Source: Eutreptiella sp. 'Long Island Sound 2002' (taxonomy: Eukaryota > Protista > Euglenida). Taken from it: a stretch of DNA of 64,000 nucleotides. How positions within the stretch are numbered: the stretch's first letter is position 1; every line of letters starts with the position of its first letter. Below are positions 2,400 through 60,900 of this stretch, piece after piece. A program made the position numbers and the translations under genes. The notes beneath the pieces were generated by a model. That model had not been told where the DNA came from, did not search any database, and saw only the letters and a program-made list of their open reading frames with translations. Location of the stretch: contig OZ038378.1 in assembly GCA_964036045.1 (NCBI GenBank), forward strand, positions 9,176,001 through 9,240,000, in the 5' to 3' direction.

Positions 2400-2560
2400 G
2401 CCCCACCGTACGGCCTTATTAGGACAACCACCCACTGCACTGCACTACCGAGACCCTCCGCAGGGCTTGGGTATGACAAACCCCCACTACAGCGCACCAC
2501 CTATGCCTTACCGCACGTCTTTGGTAGGACACACACCCACTACAAACCACTGCCCATTGC
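2400..2560. repeat. Degenerate ~52-bp minisatellite, about 3 units; same family as 4063-4210
   Basis: Recurring (a/c)ggccttNNtaggacaaacNcccactNcaNNNcact-type unit at both loci. Confidence 0.55.
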
Positions 2561-2564
2561 ACTG

Positions 2565-3040
2565 TTTGGGCTCTTTGGATGCCCTAGATGCTTGTAGAAA
2601 GCACTTGACAAAGCACAATTGTGTTTGTGCTCACCAGATGCCCTAGACCTAAAAGATGACAATGTTTGGGCTTTGGACGACTTGGACAGATGCCGACCTG
2701 CATCGTTTGGGCTCCTCGGATGCCCTTGATGCTTTGAGAAGGCATGTGGCACAACAAGGTTGGGCTCCCCAGATGCCTAGACACCAAAAGATGACAACTT
2801 TTGGGCTCTTGGACAACCTAGACACATGTTGAGTTGTCGTGTTTGGGCTTTTTGGATGCCCCAGACGAACAGTTGCGCCAAATTGCGTTCAGACTCCTCG
2901 GATGTCCTAGACGCTAAGATACCAATGACCAATGACCAAACCGAATGGCGTTTGGGCTCTTTGGATGCCCTCGATGCTAAGACAAGACCAACGGCAAAAC
3001 ATAATTGCGTTTGGGCTCTTGTGATGTCAACGCTAAGGTG
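2565..3040. repeat. Degenerate array of ~10 copies of TTTGGGCTCTTTGGATGCCCTAGA separated by variable linkers
   Basis: Copies begin near 2565, 2624, 2665, 2706, 2760, 2800, 2842, 2888, 2951, 3010; units 1-3 resemble units 4-6 (shared aaaagatgacaa linker). Confidence 0.8.
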
Positions 3041-3656: not shown

Positions 3657-4062
3657 TGTCTGGAGGCGGGCGGTGGCAGCCGTGCGTCAAGGGCATCCTT
3701 TCTGGGGAAATCGCCAAATTGAGTAGGCCGTGGAGGCCGCCTCGTTGCCAGCTATGAAAGCCCCCATACACACACAACACACGGGGCGACATGGCGATGA
3801 CAGGCTCGTTGAACTATTGCCGTGGAGCTGGCTCAGCCGAAGCCACAGAGCTACCATCCCACTTCCAGGGTGGTCCTGGGGCAGCGAGCCAGGTTCTGGC
3901 CTAAGTGCATATCGCCGAGGGGCAATACAGGGATGCACCCCTGGCCTGCACCGAAGGCCTGCCATAATGGGGAGCGACCCGACCCGAGTACGCCAGTGTG
4001 GCCATACAGGTCCAACCGGGAAGACTTGGTTAAAACGGTAATCCCCCCCCCCCACACGGCCC

Positions 4063-4210
4063 CACCACAAGGCCTTGATAGGACAAACACCCGCCGCAAA
4101 GCACTGCCTAGCCCCCACAACAAGGCCTTGTGGGATGAATGCCCACTGCACAACACTGCTCAGGCCCCGCAACAGGCCTTGGAAGGAGAAACACCCACTG
4201 CACACTACAC
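4063..4210. repeat. Degenerate ~52-bp minisatellite, 3 units
   Basis: caaggccttg...aaacaccc(g/a)c(c/t)gca unit three times; related to 2400-2560. Confidence 0.65.
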
Positions 4211-5878: not shown

Positions 5879-8339
5879 ACAACCACACGGTCAACCATAG
5901 TGCCATCACCATAATCCCTCATCAAACATAGAAATGCTGCATCAAGCTCACGTTATGGCTCGAAACTTAGACCACGGACCCCCCTAACCTTTGAATCCCT
6001 CTTGGATGACTGCATGCTCAGGAGGAGCTCTCCTCATGCTGTTTCTGTAATTTCCACATGACCACCTCAGTGACCGCAAGCTATCCAGATCACCTGTGTT
6101 GAATTTCTGTGGATGTGTGTGGATATGTGATCTCTTCTGACTACATACCTCCTGGTTCTCATGCAGCCCCCCCCCCCCCCTCCCAGCAATCGCATCCCAA
6201 GACAACTTTGTTTGGAGAGGAGCTGCTGAAGTTGTGCGCCAGTTTTCCTTTTGCAAGTCCATGTCGGAGTAGCTGCTATTTGTGTTGGCGACTGTAGTCA
6301 AAAATGCGGCTCGGGGCTCAGTGCTACTCCTGTTGATCCTGTTGATCTTGGGCCATGGGAATGCAGTCAGGGCATGTGTGCTGCCCCTTATGTGTACATA
6401 TGGGATGGGATGGTCCCTTCTGTGCTCCCTTCCATATGCAACCCGTTCATTCAACTTGTGCTGACATGTCATTGCCGTCCATCCATCAAACTGTCTGTTT
6501 GTATTTCTTGTGTGCGTGTCTCTGTGTCTCTGTGTCAGTGTGTCTGTGTGTCTGTGTGTATGTCTATCTGTGTGTTCATTCTCTTACCCCTGGAATTTCT
6601 GATTGGGTGTCACCTCAAGAGACTATTGCTCTTTCTCTAGCCCTGAAGCGATTGTGCTGTTCTGCAACACTTGCGGTGTGGCGCTTCCAATTTTCTGTCA
6701 AATGGTCTGTTTTGCAGGGTGCATGTGCTTTTGGTTCACAGCGCCATCTTCACCACCAGGTGCACAATTTCTGTGGCTTAGCTGCATGTGCACCTGATTG
6801 TGGTGGAGGAGCTAGCCTACTCACTGAATATGGCCATCACCTTGGATCCTTGGCATTCCCTACTCAGAGGCACAAGAGTGGTTGACATTTCATGAATAAC
6901 AGTGGATAGGAACACCGTGTGAACATTTTTACACAATATGGCACATGTATCAACTTATCACCCAGCCACCCCATTAGCCTTGGAACCAATTCCTCAGTTT
7001 TTGCACAACATAAACTCAGACACAAGACTGTACTACACAATCCACACAAACCCAGAAACAAGGAACATAGTGCAATCACAGAATGCATGTTCTCGAGGTC
7101 ATGAAACTCAAGCATGGCCACGAATGGCAGTAAATGGCCGTTGGTTGTCTTTCTAAAACTCTTCTTAACGCAAAGATTCACAAAAATGTGTTCAAAAAAT
7201 TCAAAGGTTTTCAGAAAGAGTGTTGTGCCCAAGGGTTTTTTGGACCACTGCGAGTGCCAAGTGCTGGGCAGCATCTAGTGACCAATGTTATGGCTTGGTT
7301 TAAGGTGACACCACCACTGTACCAATTGCACACCGCTCAGTGTTGCTTGGTGTTTTCTCTGTCATTGTGTAACCAGTCACTGCTGGGTAAAGGCTTAAGT
7401 GGGGTACCATAGGAAAAATGCTAGTACCATTTTTCGAAGGAAAAGCTGCATAGAACCAAAAAGAAAGAACAAGAATCAACCTAATGGGCATGCCCATGTT
7501 ATTTGTCATTTGTGCATGTTTCGAGCTTTCAGCCACGAGTTGCAACGCCCAGTGAGTGTACCCTACAAACCAGTTAAAATACTATAGATTTCACAAAAAA
7601 ATATGGTTTCTGGCGGGCGTAAACAGATGTTGTGTGTGGTTTTTACCAAAAAAACCACCCATTTTGTACCAAAAAAGTCCCCGGCAGATACCAAAAAACT
7701 CCCAAAATGTAACAAAAAAACCCAAATGTACCAAAAAACGATCGTTTTGATGTTGCCGGAATGGACCTCCACAAATGCAATATGCACCAACAAAGGCACT
7801 TTTTCTACAAAAAAACGGCCGTTTTCCCCATGTATGCTACACTTGTGGACCGTTGTGTACCAAAAACCAATTTGGTTGCCCTTTTTCATACTAGAAAACC
7901 CCAGGATGGGTTACTTCGGAGTTTTTGCTTTTTCACCATTTTTTGCAACTCACACACCCCTCCTGCACCCAGGCGAAACACCGAGAGGACAGTCACATCT
8001 AGTTCCATGACCTTCCACTCCCTCTCCTACCTCCATGCTTGAAATTTGCCTGAATGGACCAGCTACATGCACTACAAGCAAAGCTAGACCTGGGCATACC
8101 TTTTGTGTGTGTGTGTGTGTGTGTGTGGGACCGGGGGTTTATCACCCCTTGATTGCCCATGCGTGGCACACAGTGCATGCTGTGGGTGCGATGGCTATGC
8201 AGACATGTGCGGAGGGACGGCATCGGCCCTTCCTGGGACCACACCTCCCTCAATTGCACTTTACGTCCTCAAAACCATGGCACCGTACATCCGCGACATG
8301 TGGCTAGCCGCGTGGGAATCCTGGCATGACAACATGGAA

Positions 8340-11364: not shown

Positions 11365-12061
11365 TAGTTAGTCCAAATCACAGGACCTTCACCACAAAAG
11401 GCCTTTGGACTCGGGTAGCATGTGTATACTTCGCTATTCAGGGGTTCCTTGGGACTACCATAGGATGCGCACATTAAACAGTAAACATTTTACATGGATA
11501 GGATTGGTACTTTTGGTTCGATGTTTTCACCCAAAAACCCAACGGAAGTTTCAGTGTGCTGTGGCATGCTTCAAAATCCCCACCAACAGGCGTTGTGCCA
11601 TGCTTCTGCTGCTACTGCTTGCCCCTCTTTAATTCTACCTAGCTCGAAACAGGCAACACGCACACAACAGTCAACACACATCCTTTCCATTTCGGCCATT
11701 ACTGCATCCCACCACTTTTCGCTCTACTCTATGCTAGCCATCTGTTGCATTGACCCATGGTCTGCCCATATCCAGAATTTGAGCCTTGAGTCATCAGTGG
11801 TGGCCCAGGGAGGTGCCCCGCCAGTCCGCCATTCTGGGTCAAAAACAGCAATGCTTTGCCCCAAAGGGGGAATGTTTGCCCGGCGCGCGCCCGGCGCGCT
11901 ACTTTTGTATTAACTATCCCGACTTCAGCCCCAGATTTACCCTCCCATGGAGAAGCCCCCCAAGTAGACCACGTTGCACTGCACACCTTCCCTACAAAGC
12001 ACGTTGCAAAATAAAGCAATATCTGTGACTTCAACCACTCCAAATGTCATTTGTGTTGCAC

Positions 12062-12800
12062 TTAACAAACAACATTGGTCCCACAAGTGTGGGTGTCAAT
12101 ACATTCATTACAATAGTGCTCCTTACACTCATCACAAACTGTGATGGTGGAGCGCCTTTGGCAACACAAAACACACACTTCCGCCTCATCCTCTGCCTCA
12201 TCTTGCGTGGCGGCCGAGTTGCTTTGGTCAGTCCAAACCTGAGGCGGGACATGCTCCCATGGTCCGTAGGGGGGGTGACGGACTTGCCTTCGGATGCAAA
12301 ACTGAGTGAAATGCAACAAAATGCGGACTGACTGGTGCAACTCATTGGGGCCGCCACGCCAGATGTTCCTAACCAAACCCCAATGCCACAACCGAGCAAA
12401 CAGCTGCTCAATGCGTGCCCTGTACCACCCATGGACATCGTTGTAACCTTGTTGGCGGGCTGTCAAAGTGCCATTCTTTCTTCCAATGAATGGCACAATG
12501 ACATGAATCCGGCCTTTATAAGCGCCATCATGGCCCCCAACTTCAAAATCAAAGAAATCCCCTCGGGTACGAGAAGGTCCGTACCCATCCCAAATCAAAA
12601 CATCTGCTGATGTCCCGGGGGCCAAGGGGCAAATCCATACAATGTTGCCCAACATATCAACGGCAACAGTGACCTTGTAAACATCCAGAAAAAAAATCGA
12701 AACAATGACTCACGGTCGAGGAGCTCGGGGTGCCCGTACTTCATCCAAAATTCCTCCATTGTTTCGGCATCTGCACCCATCCGTGCAACTTCAATAGCAC
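12062..12800 (-). pseudogene. DDE transposase (IS5/Harbinger DDE_Tnp_4-like) C-terminal half with B-box-like Cys/His finger; N-terminal part deleted and frameshifted
   Basis: YKVTVAVDMLGNIVWICPLAPGTSADVLIWD, HDGAYKG (2nd D), VIVPF...LTARQQGYNDVHGWYRARIEQLFARL (E), then CVLCCQRRSTITVCDECKEHYCNECIDTHTC. Confidence 0.85.
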
Positions 12801-13122
12801 CGGACGGTTGGGGCCCAAAAGAGGGCGGAAATGCTACATCACCCCTGCATTCTCGGGGGTCCCCAACAAAGGGAACAAAATCGGAAGTCAAAACCTACGC
12901 CGGGGGTCACCATGATGCACCACGCAACAAAGCGTGGATTCAAAGATTGTCCCGGTTTCCTCAATAGCACCGGACGGTTGGGGCCCAAAAGAGGGCGGAA
13001 ATGCTACATCACCCCTGCATTCTCGGGGGTCCCCAACAAAGGGAACAAAATCGGAAGTCAAAACCTACGCCGGGGGTCACCATGATGCAGCACGCAACGA
13101 AGCGTGGATTCAAAGATTGTCC
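12791..13122. repeat. Tandem duplication with 170-bp period inside the transposon; each copy holds one GGCTACATCACCCC core
   Basis: 12791-12952 vs 12961-13122 differ at 2 positions by eye. Confidence 0.95.
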
Positions 13123-14089
13123 TAAGTGCGCCCCTTAGCGCACCCCCTAAAAGGTCACCGGTGGGGCACGGGTCCAAAAAGATGCCCGGCGCGCGCCCGG
13201 CGCGCGCCCGGCGCGCTAACGTTCCCCCAAAAGCCCCTAAAACTAGTCCAAACCACCAAAGAAAGGAAAACATATGCTGCTGCCGGCCTGGTTTCCTTGT
13301 GAGAGAATCATCTGCACCACCCTCGGTCCAACACACTGGACCACCACACCAAATTTAAAGGCTAATAGACTGCAATACACATCAAAAGCAATGAAGATCC
13401 TCCACTTGAACTGCCCATGTCCACAATCAGAGGTAGGGCACACCGTTGTCCTTCATTGCATTGTGAATGTACTGTCGTCAGGTGATTCCCCATCATCACA
13501 ATCATAACATCCAGATACAAAGGGTAGCATGCAGCGAACACAAGCAGAAATGGCCAAACACGGGTGAAAAGGGGTTGAAAAAGGTGAAAAGGGTGGAAAG
13601 CACGTTATGCCCCATTTCGGAAGAACCTCTAAATACCCGGTGTCAAACAACATATTCCACTGTGCCCATTTCCTCCATATCCCCATTTCAGAAGGACCTC
13701 TAAGATACTACCACAAAACATGGGTCTATGTTACAGCATAGGATGAAAAATGCATGCAACCATTTGACCCGCGGGTGGTCATGGGACAAGCAGGTCATTG
13801 CACCAGGGGGAGCTCGGTGCAAAGGGAAAAAATATGGCCTCTCACCATTAGACTGGCAGTCACCCAGTCAATCAATACCAAATGCGAGGGTCACAGACAT
13901 GCCAAGCGATGCTGTGGGGGTGACCACACCAGGTAGGTGCATATGCCTCTCCTGACAAGGACCCGTAGGTAAAGCTTGTGAGCGTGCTACTCCAACTGTA
14001 TGCCAGGGGTCTTGGATGGCGAGTATGGCTCTCCGCATTAGTGGCAGCCCGAACACTTGAGCCCCATAGGCAGGATCGAAACCCTTAGT

Positions 14090-31705: not shown

Positions 31706-32023
31706 CTGCAACCGGCAGCATGCACAGCCAATATGGAGAGTAATACACAACACAACGCAACACAGCACCACAGCATCTGACAAACCACACTACCCTGCAC
31801 CACACCGCACTGCTAACCACAAGGAAAAAAGTGCCATTCATACAACTTCCTGTTTTGGCTCCAATCCAGCCCACACACCCTTCCGCACCAGGGGACAACA
31901 AGAGCGCAGCTTAGTAGGCACCCTGTCACCAGCCCTCACGGTGTTCACGGTGAAGCCAAACCAAAACCAAACCAAAACCAACTCATGGTGAAGAAAGGGG
32001 GGAAATCGCATTGTTGACAAAAG

Positions 32024-33825
32024 CCCTGCCTTGTCGGGGCCCCCAAAGTGTGGACGAATCCAAACGCCTACATAACCCCTACATTCGCAGGGTCCAGAAA
32101 CTAGGGGGGAATCAAAATGGAATCATAATTGCTGCTTTTTCATGGTCCTTAAAGAGGGGAGGAATCTAAATGGCTACGTAACCGCTACCTTCCGGGATCT
32201 CGACGATGGGAGGAATCAAAATGGCTACATAACCCCTACCTCCTTGGCATCCACAAAGAGGGGAGGAATCAAAATAAGCTCTCCCATCTGAAGATCACCA
32301 AAGGTACACAGTATGGCAAGGCATTCAACTGGCTACAACCCATGCAAAAGGGATGCATAACTTACGCTGCTCGGCATTCCGGGAAGCTAAATAAATGGCC
32401 AGTAGCTACAAAATTGATGCCTCCCCATGGCGCCAAAATTGGGGCAATCAAAATGCCTACATAGGTCGTGCCCTTTGAGGGTCCCGAGTGTGCGGAGCAA
32501 CTAAAATGGCTCCAGAACTTCACTCTTCTCAGGGTCCCCAAACTAGGGACAAATCAAAATGGCTACATAACCCCTAACTTCCCGGGATCTCTCTAGTAGG
32601 GAGGAATCAAAATGGCTACATAGCCGTTGCCTTCTCAGGTTTCCCAAAGTGGAGGGGAATGAAAATGCGTGCCTTCTCGGGGTCCCCACAGATCAAAATG
32701 ACTACATAACCCTCGGTTCCCCATAGTGGGAAGGATCAAAACAGATGCATATCTCCTGCCTTCTTCGGGTCGCCAAAGATGGGAGGAATCATAATGGCTA
32801 CATAACCCATGCGTTCTCGAGGGGCACAAAGTGGGGAGGAATTCAAATGGCGTGCAGCGGAAGGGCAATGGCGTTGTAGTCCCAAGCGTTCGAGGGTCCT
32901 GAGTACAAGGAGAGACCTACTTTGCTACACACTCCATCCCTTCGGGTTGGTCGTTGTGGAAAAACAGATACATAACCGTAGTCTTCTCGGGATCCCTAAG
33001 ATCAGAATGAAGCAAAGCGGCTAGAAAACCCATCCATTGTCAACGGGGATTTTATAATGGCTACATAGCCCCCTCATTCCGGGATCCCACAAAGTGAGGA
33101 GCAATCAAAATGGCTCAATAACCCGTGGCGTTTCATGGTACCCGAACTTGGGGACAATGAAGAGGGCTACATAGCCCTTGCCTTCTCAAATCCCCAGAGT
33201 AGGGAGCAATCAATGTGGCTCAAAGATGCCAGCTTTCTCCTAGTGCCCATACAGGGGCGGGATCAAAGTGCCTTCATCACGTCTTTGGTCTTTAGCTCAC
33301 CAACGTGCAAAGTATGACAATGGCTCTGTAGCCCCAAGCTTCTCAGCGTCGTTGGTATGGGGACAAATCTCATCTACTAAATAACCCATCCCTTCTCAGT
33401 TTCCCCGTTGGGACGGGGAATCAAAATGAATACATAATCCTCATGTTGTGATCTGGGAGACTTGAATGAATCAAAGCAGCTACAAAACCCGTGCTTGCTA
33501 AGGGCCCGCGTCCCAAAAATGGGGAGGAATCACGGTGTATTTTCCTGGGATCTCGAAGAGCTAAACAAATCAAGGTGGCGATAAGACCCAAGCATTGCCG
33601 CGGCTAGAACTTGGTAGGAACCAAAAGAGATGCATACTTGGAGCCTGTTTGCCATCTCCATGTTCCAAATAACCAAAGTACTTGTGAAAACGATGCCTTC
33701 TATGGGCCCTGAAGTGGGAGGAAGTAGGGTGGCCACATGTGCCCTACCTTCCGGGGGTCCTCAAAGGGTGGAGGAATCAAAATTGCTTCACTACCAGTTC
33801 CTTCTTGGGATCCCTACTAATTGGT
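32024..33825 (+). repeat. Long, highly degenerate ~53-bp satellite of the GGCTACAT-core family (roughly 25-30 units with interruptions)
   Basis: Recurring gaggaatcaaaatggctacataacccctgccttctcggggtcccca-like unit. Confidence 0.85.
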
Positions 33826-34644: not shown

Positions 34645-34958
34645 AGTAGCTACAGAACCTCTACCTTGTTGAGATTCGCGTTGTGGGCCTTAATTAAAAT
34701 GGATACGTAACCCCTTCCTTCTTGGGTAGGAAAAACTTGAGGAAGTCAAAAGTGCTACAAACCCCCTCCCTCTTGGATGGCCTAAGAGGGCAGAGAGACG
34801 AAATTAATGACATAACCCTTGCCTTTCCGGGGTCCTAAGAGTGTGGAGGAAGCACAATGGCTAAATAACCATTGCCTTACGGGGGTCCCAAGAGTGCGGA
34901 GGAACCAAAATCGCTACCCAACCCGTATTGTGAAAGGGTCCCCAAAAAGGGCAGGAAA
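34645..34958 (+). repeat. Continuation of the degenerate 53-bp satellite, about 6 units
   Basis: aaaatggatacgtaaccccttccttcttgggt; acataacccttgcctttccggggtcc; cacaatggctaaataaccattgccttacgggggtccc. Confidence 0.75.
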
Positions 34959-37244
34959 TGACAATGTCGACATCACCACTTGCCTGCACGCCGTCCCCGC
35001 AATGGAGAGGGAGGAAAAATACGTCGGGAATAACGAACTGTAGCAACCGAAACAATTCGTTTTCGTACAAAACATTTGAAGCGATTGATATTGGTCTATT
35101 AGTGAGCAATATCCACAAAATCGTGCTACAATGTGGCCAATCCAGCGGTCGAAAGCATCAAGATGATATGATGAACCATGAAAGGAGCTTGGTGAAGATC
35201 CGTATAAGATATGCTTGATGCTAATATTTTGTCATGACAAGTCAAGAATGCAAGGATCAATGGCTAAATGTCACATCAAAGCTTAGCGGCTATTTGTGTT
35301 GCATCACTTTTGGTTTTGTATTCAACCCGTGTGAAGTATTTCGTCTGGTGTTTGGTCTTTTGTCCAAGAGGGAAGGATAGTGAGGGTATCATGGGCTAAG
35401 GTTGCCAGACTAAATTCGGTTTCTCGGGGGAGGGGGGGGGGGGCACTTTTGTTTATCCAACTGACACTTCTTACTCTCGGAAAGGGGCTCCGTTCCCTGC
35501 CATATTCTTTCATTTTTCTGTAGTTGTGGCGCCATGATGCCCGTTGACTTGGCCATCGAAAGGGGACCAAGGCCCATCCCGGCCCCGCCCATTGTCAACC
35601 TGTAGTATCTCCGTCGTGTGATGAACGGAGATGTTTAGGCAATGAAACCTGTATTTTATGGGAGAGCTAGGTCACAGCTATTCAGTGGACTACTAGACTG
35701 AGTCTACGGTTGTCAAGTAGCGATTTCGTGTTGCCGAGTTGCTGTACTTTGCGTTCCATGAGGACTTGACTGATTAAAGATCTTGTTTTTGTCCCAAAAC
35801 TTCCAATACCACAAGCATTGGTTTCAAGAAGCTTAATAGCGAGAACGAACGACAAAGACTTTACAACCCAGAAAATTGGACTTTGGTAAATAAGAACGAT
35901 GAGTTGTTGCTGTACGCTGTCCAAGAAAACATGGTTCTAGTTTGAAGGATCTACTATGATAATTCAAAGCTATACTTGCATACTTTGAAAGTTGGCTTCG
36001 AATCTACCAAAGGCGTCAACGTCGAGACCATGGCGTAGTTTTGGGAGGTGATGGAGTTGGCATCTTGTAGTTCAAGTTTGACGAGTTTGTTCAAAAATTG
36101 GACGGCGCCCCCGGCGCGCCACTTGCGCCTCGCTCGCCCCCTCCCCTGTATATGTGCCGACCTCAAACAAGGCGGCGGTTGTAAAGGCGCCACGCTCGGT
36201 GAGTTTTCGGGCCACGCTCGGTGAGTTTTCGGGAAATCACGAGAGCAGTCTCCCCTTTTTGGGTCTTTCTCCGCCATCCACCCCTTGGAAAACAACCGAA
36301 GTGCAAAAAGCCATCAATACTATGAAGGTCTCTTTGACAACCTCGGTACTAGCATCCTTGTTCACAATGAAACAATACAAGGAATCAAATTCATCTCCGG
36401 CGAACCGAACTTAATCAAGAAAAACAACATCCTCAAAGCGGAAAAAAACAAACACGCCGCGAACACCTCACCTCCTTCCATTTTTTGGCTTGCATACAAA
36501 GCACTCTCTGCTTATCAACATCCCTCGGTAGCTCCTGCATGGGCACCAAACATGTCAGCTCTTTAGGGTTTGGAAGTCCTCAGGCCCAGGCAGGCATGCT
36601 GCACATGCAGCATGCAATATTGTTCAAACAAAGACCTCAAGCACTTCCATCCATGGTACACCTCCCCTTAATGACAAAAATAATCTTGTGTGTCCAACAG
36701 GCAACGCTTTGCAGCTCAAAAATAAGCCAAAATATGGGATTCCTCAACAAAAAACCCTTTGGGGGGCCAAGATTCTTCGTTCCTACAAGGGAGGCCATTG
36801 GGGATCAATGGTCGGTTCTGATAGACTGAATGTCCCCGCCATAGACAATTCCAGCCATTAGTCCAGCAGTACTGCGAAGTCCAATCAATGCACGTGTCCC
36901 CTTCTTGGTTGGGGTGCTCCACTATGTAAAGTACAGCGAGGCGTTGCGGTTAGCTCCGTGGGTCACTTGTGTGCCTGTCCTTTGCTGCCGACTCTAGCGA
37001 ACAACCTGGATCAATATTAAAAAAAAAAGCAGTCGTCCATAAGCGTGGACTGCATTCACTGTGTTACATGCGAGCTGACTGGGCTGCATAGCATGGCACT
37101 CATTCGGCCTTACCCCGTCTGTCGCTGTTTAGTTTCAATGAGTGCAGGGGGTAACATACAAAGAGACTCAGAAAATCAAAGGGCGTAGCAAATGCATGTG
37201 TGCCACGCGGCTGTGTGTTTGAGGGACCATAGCGCGGGTGAGGT

Positions 37245-38885: not shown

Positions 38886-40947
38886 CTGTGTGGCAGCAGC
38901 ACATCGCTGTGGCCCATTCCCAAATGACCCTTGCGATGGTATCGCGGGACAGAGCACTGCTTTGGGGCCCGCAGTGCCGGGGCTGTGGAGGGGCGCAGGT
39001 TCCTTTCAGCAGTGGCATCTGGGTCAACGGACATGTGAGGCATAAGGGCTCAGCAATAGGGCCAGGCAGAGGGATGGCAGGGCACAATCATCATTCGTAT
39101 CGACACTGTGATCTCCCAATAGGGTGGGACGGCCCAGCTGCCAATGCAAATGTGCTTCTCTCAAGTCGGCAGTGCAAAGCATCTGTCACCTGTAATCGAG
39201 TACACTGCTCATTCGGCCACGGACACCGCACGGGCGCCGCATCCAGTGTCCCCCAAGGTCGCAAATGAGTACGCTTCATCCACTACCCCAACAGGATGTA
39301 CATTCTGCACGGCAGTGCTTGATGGACTGCGAAGACATCACTTTTCTCATACTGTTTTATACAAAGTTGCCCCAAGGGAAGATCCTGTCTTGTCTGACTG
39401 ACTTTTGGGGGGGGGGGGGGCTTACAGGGGGCGATCACATAATGGGGAGGTGCTGGCCTTGTGGATGAGGCATGCAAAGGCTAGGCTGCACCCCTGAGGC
39501 CCCATCCTCATCTTTCCAAACGTAGGGTCCACAGACCCTCTGCGTTCTCCATCCTCGTCTCATTCCCCTCAACCCAAACCTGCCGCTGGAAAGTTCCACT
39601 TTTGAGTTGGGGAGGCTGAGGACCACGTCAGCAAATTGTGCACGATTCCCTTGGAAAGCACCCCGCCCTGCACCCAATTGCCAAATGGGATGAAAACGAC
39701 ACAAACAGCGTATAAAACATGCTTTTCATGGGCCCTCTTGCCAGAATGGACAACCCATGCCCCCTGTTGCACTTGGCCTCCCTGTTTGGAACAGACAACC
39801 ATGGCCCGGGCTGGTAGGTGCCATGCCCACATTGGCAGCTGGTTGCATGGGGTTGAGAGGAGTGTCGGTGCAGTCTGGAGCCGCATAAGCCGGTGCATCC
39901 CACTGATCAAACGCCTGCTGGTGGATGAACCAGTCCCCCAGTTGTATGTGGGCTGGGCCCTGTGGTCTGGAAGTGCTGGTACCCTCCATTACCACGGTCC
40001 GTATGGCCTCTAGTTTTGCCCCCCCCCCCCCCGCCGCCGCCGTTGTACAATCCGCAATTCGTCATGAGCATGAGGGCCCCGCTGCTACTCCCTGCCCCAA
40101 CTGAGTTCCTGTAGCCCTCTCCCTTTCCTGACCGTAGCACCTGCGTTCGCCTGCTCAAGCTTCCAGGGTAATGATTGCATCAAAGCGGCGGCCAAATTTC
40201 CAAGTGGGGCTGCATGACGCGCATGACGCCCTTTTTTAGGCCGACTCTTGTCCACGGGCGGATATGGAATAGGACCATGTAATTCATTCATGGCAACCCA
40301 ATGCCATCACACACTGGGCACAAAAGATGGATATGTGAGACAGAGGTAATTGTTACTCTTGAGGAAAGGGGGGGGGGGATGCCAAATGGTCAGCCTGGCC
40401 ATGCCTTAGCATTTGAGGCCACTGGCCACTTCCAAATCACTGTACTATTCAAACAGACTCTTGACTGGCAGCCGAACCATGTGTGTGCGTGTGTGTGTGT
40501 GTGCGCGCGCGAGTGTGAATGGCCAATTGCCCCACCATGGGGTATTTTTCATCACCTTCAGTTCAGATGGTTGTGCAACAGAGAGTGTCCCGTGCCCAAG
40601 CATTTTTCTGTGCAAAGAGCCCTCTTCGCTTTCCATACTCTTCTGTCCCCTTATTGCTGGAGACTGTGCCATGTCCTTGAGGGTACGTTTGCCCGGTGCG
40701 CGCCCGGCATCCGAATCAATGTCCCGGTCATACATCCCAATGCTTTACCACTAAATATCACTCCCTCCTCCAGCCCAGGAACCCTAGGCACGAATGACAC
40801 AACAAAGCACAACTGCAGGTGGACAAAGAACCTTTCATGCATTGTTACTCCACAACCAAAAGGCTTGCCGAGGACTGTGTTTCAAGGAAATAATATGGGG
40901 TGTATTGTAGCATCGGAAGGTCACCGATGTAAAGAAACATTGCAAAA

Positions 40948-41296
40948 TTATGTCGCAACATGCACAACTTCTTCCCCACAAGTGTGAGGGTCAATACATT
41001 CAGCGCAATACCTCTCCTTGCACTGCCCACAAACTGTGGTGGTGTGTTTGTGACAACACAAAGCATATGAGCACATCCGCTGTGGTCCCGCGTGCCAGCG
41101 GGCATATCCACACAATATTACCCAACATGTCACCTGCGACCGTCACCTTATAAATATGGGATGCATATTTCGCGTTGCAGAGGTCAACCGAGAAAATTTG
41201 TCCACTGGAGCTAATAGGCATGCTGCCTGAGAAATGAAAACCACCGAAGCATATGCCAAGACGGCCTTTGGGTCCCCGAAGGTATTTCCTTAACAC
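40948..41296 (-). pseudogene. Deleted transposase: NAKYASHIYKVTVAGDMLGNIVWICPLARGTTADVL fused out of frame to the Cys/His finger LCCHKHTTTVCGQCKERYCAECIDPHTC
   Basis: Direct homology to the 12.1-12.7 kb copy; the catalytic middle is missing. Confidence 0.85.
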
Positions 41297-41396
41297 TTGT
41301 CCCTAGAAGTGCACGGCGTACGTACTTCGACTTCCTTTGTCACTGGGTAGTTGGTTGCTTAACCCCTACTACGTCGGGGGCCCACATGTGTGCGGA

Positions 41397-42123
41397 ATGG
41401 CTACATCACCCCTGCCTTCTCAGGGTCCCCATAGTGGGGAAATATCAATATGGCTACATCACCCCTTCCTTCTCGGGGTCGCCATAGTGGGCAAAGATTA
41501 ATATGGCTACATCACCCCTGCCTTCTCGGGGTCCCCATAGTGGGCAAAGATCAATATGGCCACATCACCCCTTCCTTCTCGGGGTCCCCATCGTGGGGAG
41601 ATCAATATGGCTACATCACCCCTACATTCTTGGGGTCCCCATAGTGGGCAAAGATCAATATGGCTACATCACCCCTGCCTTCCAGGGGTTCCCGTAGTGG
41701 GGAAATATCAATATGGCTACATCACCCCTGCCTTCTCAGGGTCCCCATAGTGGGCAAAGATTAACATGGCTACATCACCCCTGCCTTCTCAGGGTCCCCA
41801 TAGTGGGCAAAGATTAATATGGCTACATCACTCCTTCCTTGTCGGAGTCCCCATGGTGGGGAAATATCAATATGGCTACATCACCCCTGCCTTCCTGGAG
41901 TTCCCATAGTGGGGAAATATCAATATGGCTACATCACCCCTGCCTTCTCAGTGTCCCCATAGTGGGGAAAGATTAATATGGCTACATCACCCCTGCCTTC
42001 TCGGGGTCCCCATAGTGGGCAAAGATTAATATGGCTACATCACCCCTTCCTTCTCGGGGTCCCCATCGTGGGGAGAGATCAATATGGCTACATCACCCCT
42101 ACCTTCTCGGGGTCCCCATGGTG
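41397..42123 (+). repeat. Homogeneous tandem array, 14 units of 53 bp (one of 51 bp), inside the transposon
   Basis: ATGGC(T/C)ACATC starts at 41397, 41450, 41503, 41556, 41607, 41660, 41713, 41766, 41819, 41872, 41925, 41978, 42031, 42084. Confidence 0.97.
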
Positions 42124-43799
42124 TGGATAAATCAACCTAGAAAGGAATGGCTGTGGTGGGAATGAACAAAAAACTGTGAAAAGGGTGAAAGTGGGTGAAA
42201 ATACAAATACACTGTATCCCCAATGCGAAAGAAGCATCAAAAAAAATCCTTTTTCAAACAACAATCTTTCCCCAACACGGGGACAAAAAGTGCAGAAAAA
42301 TGGGGTAACTGGGGGAAGATAAGGAACAGTTTGCCCGGCGCGCTAACATACCCTCCTTTGCTGCAATTCATCACCAATCTGCACACACCCCTGCTCAGCC
42401 ATACATTAGCGCCAACTAAACGCCCAGCATGAGTTGTAGTCCGGTTGTCCAACCATATGCTCATGTTTGATTGATTGCTCAATTAGCACATTGGCATCTG
42501 TGACACACGCCTTTAGTCCCCAGGTTTTGGAACTAACTTGCTTGCCTGCACTTGTTTGTGCTCTTCATCTATCTAGTTCTAGCAAGGTACTATGTTTCTG
42601 CTGCCATTGAGCACCATTGGGTGGGCCGCTTTAACACGAAACGGCGTCGGTCCTGGTCATCCTTAGGCGGCTCTAAGCGAGTGGTCGGCCAAACCCCAAG
42701 AGCGTTTCGGCCCATAGTGAAAAATCACAGCTTTTAAAAAGGCCTTGTGGGGCCCTGCATTTTGAAATGGTTGTCGTAACCCCTGTTTAGGGGAATAATG
42801 TTTTTTCAGAGGGTCCCATCAAAAATTTAATGTTTCACATCCACGTTTCACAATGCAGTGAGGAAAACCCAGTGTTGAACGCCCCCCCCCCCCCCTAGTG
42901 ACATACATGTGTAGTGTTTACAAACCACCATTCTGTATTGAGGGTTTTATGCTGAATGACTCCATCTCCCATTGTGGAGTGCCTGTTTGACACCACCTCA
43001 CACGCTGGTGGTGTGTGGTTGTCAACCTATGAATTACCTGGAAATGAAAAGTGCAGGGTAGCAAGCAAACACAGGCAAGTAGTGGACAGTGCATAGTACG
43101 TTGATGTAGGGAGGCATGCTCAAGCAGTATTGTATTGCTGAACAAACAGGGTTCGGTAACAAAGATAATAAACTCTGTGAATGAATACATATTGAAGAAC
43201 ACGTAGTCAAACCTCACACTTGTGTATATTGTTGATGAGAAATAACATAGAAAAACGCAAGAATGTAGCATTGTAAAAATGGAAATCCGCTCAACAACGC
43301 TCTGCAGAGCGTTGCTTCGATTGAAAACTCAAAAAAAAAAAGCATACCATGTCGCAAACCACTGCCTGTTGCAACAGGGGGGGCAAACCAACAGAAACAG
43401 ACTCCTGCAGCACCCATTACTTCCCCTTACTCGCCGCCTTGGGCTTTGGTTTGGAGGCTGTTGCACCCTTCACCCTGTTCTGGAACAAATCTAGGCTCCT
43501 TGGTGGTTTGAAAGGCTTGTTGCCACCACCACTGCTGGAACTGGAGCGGTCATCCCTGTCATCCCTGGCATGTGGCTCCTGGGTCTGTCTTTTCCTTTTT
43601 GCTGGTGTGGTTCTCTTCTAAGGCTCCAAGCCATCGTCCTCATCCTCGCCAATGTCATCCGCATCGTCATCACTCTACTCGCATTTCACTTTCTCCACCC
43701 CAACCGGTACCCCATTGACAATATCCTTCATCCATCTAGCCCAGCCAATGATGTACAAGGCATCTAGTTCCTAAATTGTCTCCCGGCTGTCATAGATGA

Positions 43800-47636: not shown

Positions 47637-47705
47637 ACCACCACCACCACCACCACCACCACCACCACCATCACCACCACCACCACCACCACCACCACCA
47701 CCACC
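47637..47705. repeat. (ACC)n trinucleotide microsatellite, about 23 units
   Basis: Direct reading; one ATC interruption. Confidence 0.95.
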
Positions 47706-56528: not shown

Positions 56529-57481
56529 CTGGGAATGGGCACACGTGAAGGGACAGCCTCCCTGTGTCAGTATAATGCACCCACAACTAGCACCCCAACC
56601 CCCCCTTGCCCGGCTTGATGCTGGGAGCACACTTCAGTAGCAACACCAAGGGCAAAAAGAATAGAGGTGCCACGCACTACTGATGTGTAACACTTGGTAT
56701 CGCACAATACTGCACTCACGCATCACGCCCCCCCGCCCTCTATCAGCAAAGCAGGTCACACATAAAACAAAGCACTGGACACCGGTTATACTACACAATA
56801 CCCAACCAGACATCATGAATCCCACTTGCCCACCACTTTGCGACCTCCCCAGGCCCCTAGACCTGCGGTGACTGGATTCCTGCAGCGTCCGTTTGCCATC
56901 AATGGGGTTTTGGTGGGGTTCCCAGAAGTGGTCAGGTTGGTGATGTTGCGAGAGACTGTCCATATCTCCTTTTAGTAGATTTCTGTTGTCAATTACAATC
57001 ACAAGTCTGCTTTCCACCTGCTGCTCCCTGCTGGCCCCTCTCTTTCTCGCTCTATTGTTGCTTTTTTTCTCTCTCCCAACCCACCGTATCACTGAGTCGA
57101 AATTCAAAAGCCAAAAACATGGGATGGACGGGTCTCTCTCTCCTTCTCTTGGTCCTTGAACTAAACATGCCAACGTGCATATGGCAATTCACAGCCACCC
57201 CTCGGCATTTTTTTTTGCGTCTGGCTGGCCGTACTCGTACACTACCCTGGGGTGGGCGGGCTTTGAATTGGGGGGAGGGGTCGATAGAACCCCGTGGCTA
57301 GACCCCCCGCCCGCCCCAAAAAGGGCTCAATTGACGGAACCCCCCAAAAGCAACCTTGGGACCTTCATGGTTCGAATGGTGGTGGTATTTATGTTAAAGG
57401 ACACTTGGTCCCCGGTCAGTTCCGGCTACGCATGTTTGTAGTGCCCCACCAAGGCCTTTCATGAGAACCACACGACCTACG

Positions 57482-57640
57482 AAAGAGTTACAGTCAAAGT
57501 CAGAGTCAGAGTCGGAGTTAGAGGTAGAGTCAAAGGCAGAGCTAGTGTCTAAGTAGGAGCTCGAGTCGGAGGCAGAGCTAGGGTCTCTGTCGGAGCTTGA
57601 GTAGAAGTTAGAGTTGGAGGTAGGGATAGAACTAGAGGTA
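57482..57640. repeat. Low-complexity 6-bp-period tract (GAGTCA/GAGTTA/GAGGTA)
   Basis: Direct reading. Confidence 0.75.
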
Positions 57641-57704
57641 GCAAATGCATCTGTTGCTGCCCTGGAAGGTGCATAGTTAGGGTCAGCCAAACAGCTACAT
57701 GGAC

Positions 57705-57985
57705 CACAAGTGGGCAGATTGGCTACATAACGCCTGCCGTCCAGGGGTCCCCAACGCTTCAGAGCAGGGGACAAAATCAGAAGTGGCCCACAAGTGGGCG
57801 GATTGGCTACATCACCTCTGCTGTGTTGGGGGGTCCCCAACACTTGAGAACAGGGAACAACATCAACAATGGCCCACAAGTGGGCCGGGTGGCTACATCA
57901 CCCCTACCGTCTCGGGGGTCCCCATCATGGGAATGGATCAGAGTGGCTACATAACCGCTGCCTTCTCGGGGTTCCCCATAGTGAG
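57705..57985 (+). repeat. GGCTACAT-core array with 84-86-bp units, switching to a 53-bp unit
   Basis: cacaagtggg starts at 57705, 57789, 57875; four core copies. Confidence 0.85.
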
Positions 57986-60900
57986 GGGACATGAACAAGT
58001 GACACAGTGGTGCCTCTTCTCCATGCAAAAATGGTGCCTATCAATTGAGCCCTTTTCCCAAAATTTCCCCCCCCCAAAATTTTGGGGGCTCTATTGACCC
58101 CCGTGCGGTGACACGGTGACACGCTCTATTGACCCCCCCCCCCGCCGCCCCCAATTGAAAATCTGCCACCCCCTGCCATCCAATACGCCGGCTATGCCAT
58201 CAGCAGGTGGCACAAACCAATGCAACAACAACAACCAAGAGGATCCAAAATGGTGGAAAAGCAAACAAGTGCTCATCTATAACATGCCACTTGCTGTTTT
58301 GGGGATGGCATCCCATGTCAGGTTGCGTACACTAGGGCAAGAAATGCGAATGCACAAATGTGAATGCACGTTGTGGAGTACACATCTTCTCTGAGTGGTT
58401 GGCCACCGCAGGCCAAGAGAGCTCTGTGCTTGTCAGACATAAAAAACCACCCACATTGCTGGCACACTTTTTTGGACACTAAATCAGCCATAGAATGGGC
58501 CAGACAGCTCAAAATGCAGCGAATCATGTTGCAATAGATGCGCACTTCGCACTCCGCGGTCGTTTTGAGCAACCTAGATGCCGGTTTTGAGCCACAGTGT
58601 GCGCAAAAAGCCCTTTTAACCGCCTGCTGCTTGCTGCTGCTTGCTGCTGTTGCTTGCTAAAATGAGATGCTCACCCTGGACCCTAATTAGGGTTGTAAAA
58701 CCTCAACAGGGTAAACCCAGCTTGGTAACCCTGTCTTGATTGACCGAGACCTTGCCATTTGGCCTCTTGCCCTGCACCGGTTTAATTGAAAAAATGTCTT
58801 GTGCAGTGGTGTGGGCGGCACAGCTGTCTGGAGATACTGTAGTTGTCCCACAGCGGGATGTTTGTTCAGGATCTAGTGCGTGTTCACCTGGGCTCTGAAA
58901 ACCATCTGAGGCTGATGCGCCCGGCAGCTGCACACATCCATTGTGCCCATGCATGATGAAAGCTGCAGAGTGCTTACAAACCGTAGCAGCTGAGCCCTTG
59001 CACGACGAATACAGCCCCCCCCAAAAAGAAATCGAAGACGGGACAATCACCATCACCACCACCATCTCCTGCAAAAGGAAGAAACCCCGGTGCCAAACCT
59101 ACCGGGTGAGGACAGATCGCAGGTTGTGTGACACATCCACTGGGCTCTTGAGCCGAAGTCTGGCGTGCTCGGCACATGAAGTCTTTAGACGACACAATGT
59201 GCCTTGGCCCCCCGCAGCCTCAAAAATGGGTTTTAGAAACAAGAAGAAAACCGAGTCCATGAAAGCCAAGCCCGTGTGTGGATGCACATCCCATACGCCA
59301 GGCGGGAGACCACAAATGGACAGCACTTGAAGGGCACTCAACAGCACTTGGAGGGTATCTGACGACGGTTGGAGGTTGGAGGGGAACCGTAGGGTAACCT
59401 GCAGCGGTTGGAGGTTGATGTTTTTTCACAGAAAAAAAAAAGAATAAACCTTGTCCACTAAAAAAAGCCCTGCCACTGCATGGAGGGAATACTCGGGCAC
59501 AATCCATACATCGACACCCCCACCAACGTTTTAGGCTTCCCAAATGGTTGGCAGTGGGGGGTAGGGGGTGACCCAAACCCCAGCCCGAAAGCGACATATT
59601 TCAGATCCCCATGAATTCTGACCGTTTTGACAAGAAAAAGATGGCCGCCGTGAAATGAAAAAATCACATTTCTGTGGTGCAAGAAGACGCCCTGAGATTG
59701 TGGTCTGACAGGGATGATATTTCATGATTCTGACGCCATATTCGAAACTCCATGCAATTCTGACCACTTGGAGTAAACAGGGGCCTGCCGAACTGACCCG
59801 CTATGATCCTTAGTGAAAAAACGCAGACCAGAGGCGTGGGCAATCCATGGGGTGCATGTTTCTGATCAGATAGGGTCATCACGTCCGTGCTGCCGTCACG
59901 GGATTTCAACCCCGTGCTTGGTGTTGGTTGTAGACCTGCGCGTGCAGACGGACAGGTGACGCCGGCCCCAGTCCTCCAAGGGCTCCAAACAGAGTGCAGT
60001 ACGCTCAGGCATCCGCATCAATCCAGAAGGCACACCTGACGCCGCACGCACCACTCTCTGGACCGTGGCGTTCTCGCAGGCAGAGCCCACAATACTGCAC
60101 CCACCAGACAAAATGCCTTGGACACGTTCACTTTCGGAGGCAGCTACCAGCAACTGGAGGCCTGGGGCAATGATGTAATGCAGTCGTACCACTAGTGCTC
60201 GGCAGGGGCAGTGAGTTTCGTTAGAGATTAGCCCCCATGAGCAACACCTGTTCACGTCATACCAAAAACCTGACAGGAAGCTGCTGCATTCTGTGCACAA
60301 TTCAGTCGGACCCAGCGCCACGAAATGAGGTACCCGAGCTCGTGTGCCCCATGGTAATCCTACGTGGAGGTCCCGCAAGCGGTGCCATGCAGGTCACAGG
60401 CTATCGCACCATGCCTTGCATGAAGGGGATACCTCGGAGGTATCGGTGGGGGGGTGGGGGGGAGAGGAGGTAGGGGTGGGGGTGGGGGATGCCAGGGGCA
60501 GTTCACACTGATCGACTCACGGGTTTGGCCACATGGTGTCCAGCACAGCTGTTCGAACCTGCCACAATGTGTTACCGCCAGGTCACAACAGGCGTGCCAT
60601 TAGCATGATGGCGGCACCTGTCTCCCCATCGTCTCCTCCGTGGTTGGGCCCGGTATGTCACCCTAGGCCCTGAGCCCGGTGCAGGGGTCGTGCTGCGACC
60701 ATGGCCCCACTCCTGGGCTCCCTTCAACCCCCTTTGGGGCGACCTGCGACACTGTTTGTGGGGGTGTTCTCTATCCCCACAGCCCACAGGGTGAGCACCC
60801 AAGGGCCTCCGGCCCCGGTGCCATGGGCCATCTGACCCCCCTGGTCAGTCGCCCTGCGTCCTTCCCATCTTGTCACTCGTCGCACCTGTCACCTCTAGGG

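Follow-up and report, generated by a model that had tools for sequence, protein, structure and literature searches.

The 64-kb stretch of euglenid DNA analysed here (the window) contains three elements of one transposon clan, E1, E2 and E3. The array under study lies in E2 (40679-42355, minus strand), a PIF/Harbinger-like, internally deleted element of 1,677 bp that was delimited by its terminal motifs and flanks. E2 runs from a 5' end at 42355 to a 3' end at 40679. Its ends read GAGGGTACGTTTGCCCGG... and the reverse complement of GAGGGTATGTTAGCGCGCC..., belong to the type GAGGGTA[C/T]GTT..., and are flanked by a CTT target-site duplication at 40676-40678 and 42356-42358. Remnants of a transposase gene were identified at 40963-41236 on the minus strand using tblastn and codon comparison. 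They comprise a DDE segment (41066-41236), with 77-79% amino acid identity to the young family of elements with 170-bp units, and a C-terminal Cys/His finger remnant found with tblastn (40963-41061).

The array is a variable number tandem repeat (VNTR) of 14 53-bp units at 41397-42135, with the core on the plus strand, and makes up 44% of the length of the element. TRF reported a period of 53, 14.0 copies and 88% matches, and nhmmer identified 14 full units. Given the position and minus-strand orientation of the transposase remnants (40963-41236), the array lies on their 5' side, and its core strand is antisense to them. A preliminary description of this DNA had placed a 14 x 53-bp array in a Harbinger-like element with a target-site duplication, upstream of a transposase remnant. 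TRF and the CTT flanks bear this out, with the end of the array at 42135 rather than 42123. The array had also been set apart from CRISPR, rightly and, in a eukaryote, trivially, as the units are joined head-to-tail without spacers.

Two unit variants, GGGGAAATAT and GGGCAAAGAT, alternate along the array, which points to the duplication of multi-unit blocks. Within the unit, mutations are most frequent at the CpG in TCGGGG, which reads TCAGGG or TTGGGG in 6/14 units; such changes are consistent with cytosine methylation of dead copies. An inverted repeat between the array and the 5' end of E2 (42263-42285, plus strand) is a solo second palindrome with its tail. It reads GTCCCC-GTGTT-GGGGA on the plus strand and TCCCC-AACAC-GGGGAC on the opposite strand, and is also found in locus L008.

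Other elements and arrays in the window

E1 (11866-13228, minus strand), delimited by its ends and by the AAA duplication on its flanks, is young and derives by deletion from the 170-bp-unit family. Its array of two 170-bp units (12791-13122, plus strand, TRF) lies 106 bp inside the 5' end. The cores at 12833 and 13003 occupy the place equivalent to that in E2, as had been noticed, and have two substitutions and a 1-nt insertion relative to the 53-bp core. E3 (approximately 57249-58173, minus strand) was recognized by its inverted ends, GGGGTGG.../GGGGGTGGCAG..., and belongs to a third family. Its target-site duplication is probably CCT, which is ambiguous because it overlaps with the terminal C run. 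E3 retains a Ser-rich transposase remnant at about 57484-57640 and, 178 bp inside the 5' end, a mixed array identified with TRF and nhmmer (57699-57995, plus strand). Two 84-86-bp units are followed by two ~53-bp units with spacings of 84, 86 and 54 bp, so that E3 is the third element with terminal inverted repeats (TIRs) and both unit lengths that had been proposed.

The old degenerate 53-bp arrays of the preliminary description are also present. nhmmer and similarity searches detected roughly 34 decayed ~53-bp units with ~65-70% identity at 32020-33825 (plus strand). Neither a terminal repeat nor a transposase remnant was detectable for this array. Beyond 33825 it is patchy and reaches about 35006, with a second decayed stretch of the same type at 34645-35006 (plus strand, TRF and nhmmer). 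The 33-nt core, with up to 3 mismatches, has 11 matches in the window compared with 0.00 expected. A 14-nt piece of the core has 24 matches compared with 0.5 expected, located at 12833 and 13003, at four sites in 32067-32797, at 14 in the E2 array and at four in 57722-57946.

Other repeats were observed in passing. Homopolymeric runs of G or C, 11-17 nt long, are common near the elements, as at 39407-39421, 40018-40032 and 40368-40386 and at positions 6840-6860 of locus L025. An (ACC)23 microsatellite (47637-47705) lies inside long open frames of both strands, encoding poly-His/Thr/Pro or poly-Gly/Val. Unrelated tandem repeats of 141, 59 and 52 bp occur near the start of the window, at 2558-3020 and 4058-4204.

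A PIF/Harbinger-like clan

The carriers form a large, very abundant and apparently undescribed clan of PIF/Harbinger-like cut-and-paste transposons in this euglenid genome. A literature search found no description of Harbinger elements of Euglena. The minus-strand ORF of E1 (12062-12655) matched Pfam PF13359 (DDE_Tnp_4) with E = 3e-4 and 20.9 bits, which is below the 24.8-bit cut-off, and D..D..E-like blocks are visible in full-length transposase ORFs. This ORF has >17,000 candidate genomic copies, many of them 99-100% identical. The transposase of the clan ends in a C-terminal, B-box-like Cys/His finger. Six-frame ORF lists (unspliced) of the 2.8-4.0-kb elements contained transposase frames only, and a second (Myb-like) ORF was not found in them.

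Young elements were defined from ten-kb stretches around 13 long-ORF copies. They are 1.9-4.0 kb long, begin with GGGGGAACGTTAGCGCGCCGGGC and end with ...(GCGCGCCGGGC)n AAACATTCCCCC. TIRs with 3-bp duplications were found in 8 long copies and ~20 short copies. The duplications are varied (GGT, AGG, TGA, ATA, CTT, CTA, CAA, AAT and others) and do not follow a TWA (TAA/TTA) target preference. The young 5' end has 3,319 genomic copies compared with 0 for the reversed control.

Genome-wide counts refer to the 2.28-Gb assembly, while comparison of loci rests on the ~290 kb that were read. On C1, the 201-Mb contig that includes the window, clan copies, counted as cores and 5' ends, are concentrated in the intervals ~0-40 Mb and 140-200 Mb and sparse between, which suggests arm-biased insertion or retention. 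The spliced-leader 24-mer of Euglena gracilis has 5,458 genomic copies compared with 0 when reversed. Along C1 these are scattered singly and are not solely in tandem clusters, and could represent dispersed SL-RNA genes or retro-copied sequences that bear the leader.

Arrays as element cargo

Five or more families contain the repeated module, at a distance of 85-240 bp from the 5' end, always between that end and the ORF and always antisense to the transposase. Arrays in this position are carried by E1, E2, E3, L001, L003, L007, L008, L028 and L039. Placement relative to the ends was also examined in a small sample of six independent loci fetched by the core alone. In 5/6 of these a clan-type 5' end in the expected orientation lies 205-240 bp downstream of the core, and the sixth locus is interrupted by a further insertion. 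The arrays that turned up by chance in L021, L028 and L039 likewise adjoin such ends. These placements support arrays that are borne by the transposons, in agreement with the preliminary description.

One of these loci was considered as a possible chimera. A 53-bp array joined to a young transposase in L021 would have proved the exchange of blocks between families. This was rejected since the array belongs to a neighbouring element and each nested clan element has its own ends. Three or more clan elements, whose ends are of a third type (GGGGGGCACTGGGTGCC...) and whose 11-mers are GCGCGCAGTGC, are nested at positions 3900-5720 of L021 (oriented copy), next to a young copy that is truncated at its 5' end.

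Unit length differs by family (46, 53, 86, 107 or 170 bp), and the number of units per array ranges across the clan from 1 to 34 or more. Arrays of 170-bp units begin ~120 bp inside the young 5' end and have 0-6 units per fetched copy. Those of 53-bp units have 14, 7, 3 and 6 units at four loci; a single unit was also seen, and runs elsewhere span at least 24 units. A separate subfamily is indicated by 170-type arrays with a spacing of 171 bp, among them those at C1:2146774-2147458 and C1:172603522-172603864.

Reversed controls gave 0 matches for all three repeat patterns counted genome-wide, which identified 6,628 53-type cores, 19,184 170-type cores and 1,406 junctions between 53-bp units. 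The ~26,000 cores amount to well under 0.1% of the genome. Among the matches listed, the first 100 of each search, runs are mostly of 1-6 units and occur on all large contigs, and the longest array is ~1.3 kb (C1:180.98 Mb); the decayed arrays in the window measure 1.8 to ~3 kb. The earlier suggestion that these transposons seed and spread a satellite therefore holds in part. The arrays are element cargo, and short arrays of variable length have spread. A large satellite derived from the core, in the classical sense of tens of kb at few loci, was not seen among the matches listed, and the longest arrays are 1.3 to ~3 kb. A search of metagenomes with the core patterns found no copy elsewhere.

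One module duplicated in different phases

Alignment of the family consensus units showed that the linkers are homologous between unit types. Every unit contains the core, a palindrome TCCCC-loop-GGGGA with a loop of 3-14 nt, and an A-rich tail, AAAATCAGAAGT or a variant of it. A second palindrome type, GCCCAC-NN-GTGGGC, occurs in the 86-, 107- and 170-bp units and in the first unit of 53-bp arrays. The ancestral module is ~90 bp long, with the core GCTACATCACCCC-loop-GGGG-TCCCC followed by the palindrome and the A-rich tail. The shared layout implies that the 53-, 86-, 107- and 170-bp periods are tandem duplications of this one module in different phases. It had been proposed that the core is kept while the linkers change in length and sequence. 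The first half stands, with 31/33 identity between families, and the change of linker sequence is overstated, as the linkers are homologous pieces of the same module.

Two loci depart from the usual arrangement. A sister family with GCACTGCGGGC 11-mers (L028:6950-7260) has a single core, and what it repeats is a 54-bp piece whose homologue in the 170-bp unit lies outside the core. The 5' subterminal region as a whole therefore seems liable to tandem duplication. Arrays of 103-108 bp at L025:6950-7330 have two diverged cores per unit and palindromes of the GCCCA-NNNN-TGGGC or CCAAT-A-ATTGG type, and no terminal repeat was recognizable near them.

Conservation of the core

The main comparison between families was of E2 with the 170-bp family. 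The core is 31/33 identical with one inserted G, and the 5' terminal repeat is 20/23 identical. The DDE coding DNA is 68.5% identical, and its third codon positions match at 22/56 (39%). If core positions matched as often as third codon positions do, at least 31/33 matches would have a probability of 5e-11; with the identity of all coding DNA the probability would be 5e-4. Except for the terminal repeat, the core is far better conserved between E2 and the 170-bp family than anything else. blastn of E2 against the young family gave two matches only, one of 56 bp with 84% identity in the core region and one of 94 bp with 76.6% where the zinc finger is encoded. The homology found by nhmmer between 53-bp and 170-bp units ends exactly at unit positions 4-35. 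Three 53-bp families with different flanks and different 11-mers have 35/35 identical core positions and 13-16/18 in the rest of the unit. As units were partly found via the core, its apparent conservation is inflated, although E1, E2 and E3 can also be recognized without the core, from their ends and transposase.

Inside single arrays, whose units belong to dead copies, the core does not consistently vary less than the remainder of the unit. The proportions of positions that differ from the consensus of the array were, for core and rest, 5.8% and 9.5% (p = 0.06), 7.3% and 7.9%, and 3.1% and 3.2%, and in the old array 22.7% and 13.1%. The expectation that the core changes more slowly than its linkers thus holds between families and does not hold consistently within arrays. 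A near-invariant core where third codon positions are saturated argues for selection in active lineages, and even decay of core and linker in dead copies is expected if selection is limited to lineages that still replicate. We therefore infer that the core is under purifying selection in the autonomous lineages only.

The core is constant where other subterminal repeats are not. Short 11-mers beside the ends are specific to each family (GCGCGCCGGGC, GCACTGCGTGC and GTCAATAGAGC types). Since the 11-mers differ among families and the core does not, the core is probably read by a factor common to all of them.

The array is dispensable for transposition

Among 30 copies fetched by the young 5' end alone, 22 are without the core. 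Eight of these 22 have both deletion breakpoints in common and are inserted at separate loci, between perfect duplications that differ in sequence. Counted genome-wide, the first deletion junction of this array-less derivative has 1,753 copies. The corresponding number for the array boundary of the young subfamily is 113, a boundary too subfamily-specific to estimate the number of units per array. An array-less derivative at ~1,750 copies shows that the array is not needed for transposition. In a 3,982-bp element no core 9-mer was found outside the 5' array, and the 3' end is thus without the core.

Function of the core

The array is an ordinary 5' subterminal VNTR of the clan, and we think it somewhat probable that the core within it is a conserved cis-regulatory or docking site. 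Position on the 5' side only, fixed orientation, conservation in the autonomous lineages, invariance across families whose end motifs differ and dispensability together lead to this reading. Different families tandemly duplicated different stretches of the ancestral ~90-bp module, and changes in unit number would come from slippage, unequal exchange or abortive gap repair, with the short palindromes probably contributing. The core would most likely serve as the site at which a factor shared by the families docks, which may be a host factor or the conserved zinc finger or N-terminal domain found clan-wide. By analogy with mouse L1, it would most likely control expression of the transposase gene, with the units acting as promoter- or enhancer-like monomers, and not cutting and pasting. 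To our knowledge the promoters of euglenid nuclear genes are essentially undefined, which leaves nothing to compare the core with. The preliminary description had offered a functional module as one of two readings, the other being the satellite discussed above. Conservation between families favours a functional module.

Two observations weigh against a regulatory site. Blocks exchanged among families, whether through gene conversion or through a switch of template in gap repair, could give the appearance of selection, and the near-identical units of 53-bp families (51/53 identical though the flanks are unalignable) hint at such exchange. In addition, the amplification of a non-core piece in L028 counts against selection for many copies of the core.

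The least unlikely alternative is that the core enhances transposition. It would be a non-essential accessory site for the element's own transposase, bound for example by the strictly conserved C-terminal Cys/His finger or the N-terminal domain, and would boost excision or synapsis. The HDR motif found only at the left end of Sleeping Beauty and the internal enhancer of phage Mu are precedents for enhancers of this kind. The constant distance from the 5' end (85-240 bp in every family) suits this role, as do the palindromic half-sites, which could hold a dimeric binder, and the finding that, when E2 is compared with the young family, conservation is highest in the core and in the stretch that encodes the zinc finger, which are also the sole blastn matches. 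However, the 3' end has neither core nor core fragment, and the most successful derivative is core-less (1,753 junctions compared with 113 young array boundaries). The 11-mers beside both ends are better candidates for transposase sites since they co-vary with the family, which the core does not. A loop of 3-14 nt in the second palindrome also fits a dimer with fixed spacing poorly. We consider a transposition enhancer unlikely.

Somewhat more doubtful is a neutral, slippage-prone VNTR with no function, the likeness of the cores coming from recent shared ancestry or from repeated exchange during gap repair. The uneven within-array figures (5.8/9.5%, 7.3/7.9% and, in the old array, 22.7/13.1%), the dispensability of the array, the amplification of a different part of the module in L028 and the near-identical units in families with non-aligning flanks all agree with neutrality. 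So does the literature on other elements, as VNTRs of Medicago Harbinger elements were ascribed to abortive gap repair (PMC2213677) and the palindrome in each repeat of a clam MITE was described as a potential hotspot of array-length change (PMC3879986). Neutrality does not account well for the sharp edge of homology at unit positions 4-35 next to a diverged tail, which selection on a site predicts and transfer of whole blocks does not. Nor does it account for 31/33 core identity where silent sites are saturated, or for the retention of the core in one fixed position across five or more families, which have three types of subterminal repeat between them. A conserved cis-regulatory or docking site within an otherwise ordinary VNTR is thus the reading we retain.

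Predicted hairpins

It had been proposed that each unit can fold into two hairpins, and both the MFE and the centroid prediction for the 53-bp unit match the proposed fold exactly. The stability of this fold is that of shuffled sequence. For DNA and RNA and on both strands, z-scores against dinucleotide shuffles are -0.08 to -0.73, and 40-87/200 shuffles fold at least as well. Among the 53-, 86- and 170-type units on both strands, the minus strand of the 86-bp unit alone reaches z ~ -2. Covariation in the stems, which had been suggested as a check, was absent from 44 aligned 53-bp units; the score was 0.070 compared with 0.069 in shuffles, 86.2% of cells pair compared with 85.8%, and most stem changes break the pair. 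Differences on both sides of a stem occur solely between the two palindrome types, whose homology is unproven. Rfam searches at the gathering threshold and at E <= 1 gave no match (best E-value 0.22), and a tRNA scan found no tRNA-like features. The hairpins were therefore rejected as a selected RNA or DNA structure. We infer that the stems are C4/G4 blocks conserved as sequence, with the hairpins a by-product.

It is accordingly very improbable that each unit is transcribed, folded as a double hairpin and processed, for instance to small regulatory RNAs that act on the element; the predicted double hairpin, the TCCCC/GGGGA stem retained across families with 3-14-nt loops and the GCCCAC-NN-GTGGGC palindrome, which may fill the same slot with three pairs changed on both sides, speak for such an RNA, and shuffle-level stability, pairing and covariation no higher than in shuffles, the empty Rfam and tRNA searches and the unestablished homology of the two palindrome types speak against it.

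Comparison with known systems

A VNTR inside a transposon is ordinary anatomy, known from Medicago and, in other types of element, from bivalves and Drosophila. The closest precedent is the MtPH-A6-4 group of PIF/Harbinger elements in Medicago truncatula, which has 60-bp subterminal VNTRs (Grzebelus et al. 2007, PMC2213677). Both belong to the same superfamily and make 3-bp duplications. In both, the subterminal units are imperfect and vary in number by copy (2-35 in Medicago, 1 to 34 or more here), some members are without units, arrays elsewhere in the genome are always attached to an element terminus, and there are deletion derivatives such as abortive gap repair would give. Unlike the Medicago arrays, those of the euglenid clan are confined to the 5' side and to a single orientation, one core is common to at least five families with different ends and unit lengths, and this core is conserved well past silent-site divergence. 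The host also differs, as does the transposase, which has a C-terminal B-box-like finger and was seen with no second (Myb-like) ORF.

The bivalve tandem-repeat MITEs DTC84/pearl have a palindrome in each repeat that was proposed as a hotspot of length change (Satovic and Plohl 2013, PMC3879986), and the foldback element Tetris of Drosophila virilis carries short internal arrays (PMC4079207). In these systems, as in the euglenid, non-autonomous DNA elements carry and disperse short internal arrays. Those of DTC84 and Tetris can expand to satellite-like blocks, whereas no large core-derived satellite was seen in the euglenid. The carriers are also different, a pearl-related MITE for DTC84 and a foldback element for Tetris.

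In Ac/Ds and En/Spm, short subterminal repeats that bind the transposase or TnpA are present at both ends, form a regulatory region and are needed in cis for efficient transposition. The euglenid elements are similar in having short repeated motifs inside the ends of a cut-and-paste element. They are unlike Ac/Ds and En/Spm in that the 3' end is without the core and the core-less derivatives are the most numerous. Repeats that are essential in cis at both ends, of the Ac/Spm type, are thus not what was found; the core is at the 5' end only and the array-less derivative is widespread.

The array is a structural hallmark of an abundant and apparently unnamed clan (~26,000 cores), and should aid repeat annotation in a genome where most repeats are unclassified. 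The near-invariant 32-nt non-coding block, dispensable for mobilisation, is a testable candidate for a cis-regulatory or protein-docking site in a euglenid.

The 5' monomers of mouse L1 are tandem units of variable number whose promoter activity was shown experimentally (PMC9022269, PMC6454616). Like the euglenid units, they lie at the 5' end upstream of the ORF, vary in number, are conserved in active lineages and differ in type between subfamilies. L1 is a retrotransposon and the euglenid clan consists of DNA transposons, so that the likeness is an analogy of mechanism and not one of membership. By this analogy the core may be a portable regulatory monomer used clan-wide, on which a host transcription factor or the conserved zinc finger of the clan docks and drives or tunes expression of the transposase, a specific proposal that we put forward as speculative. 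If true, the core would be the DNA-transposon counterpart of the mouse L1 monomer promoter and among the first sequence-defined promoter or enhancer elements of a euglenid nucleus, useful for expression tools.
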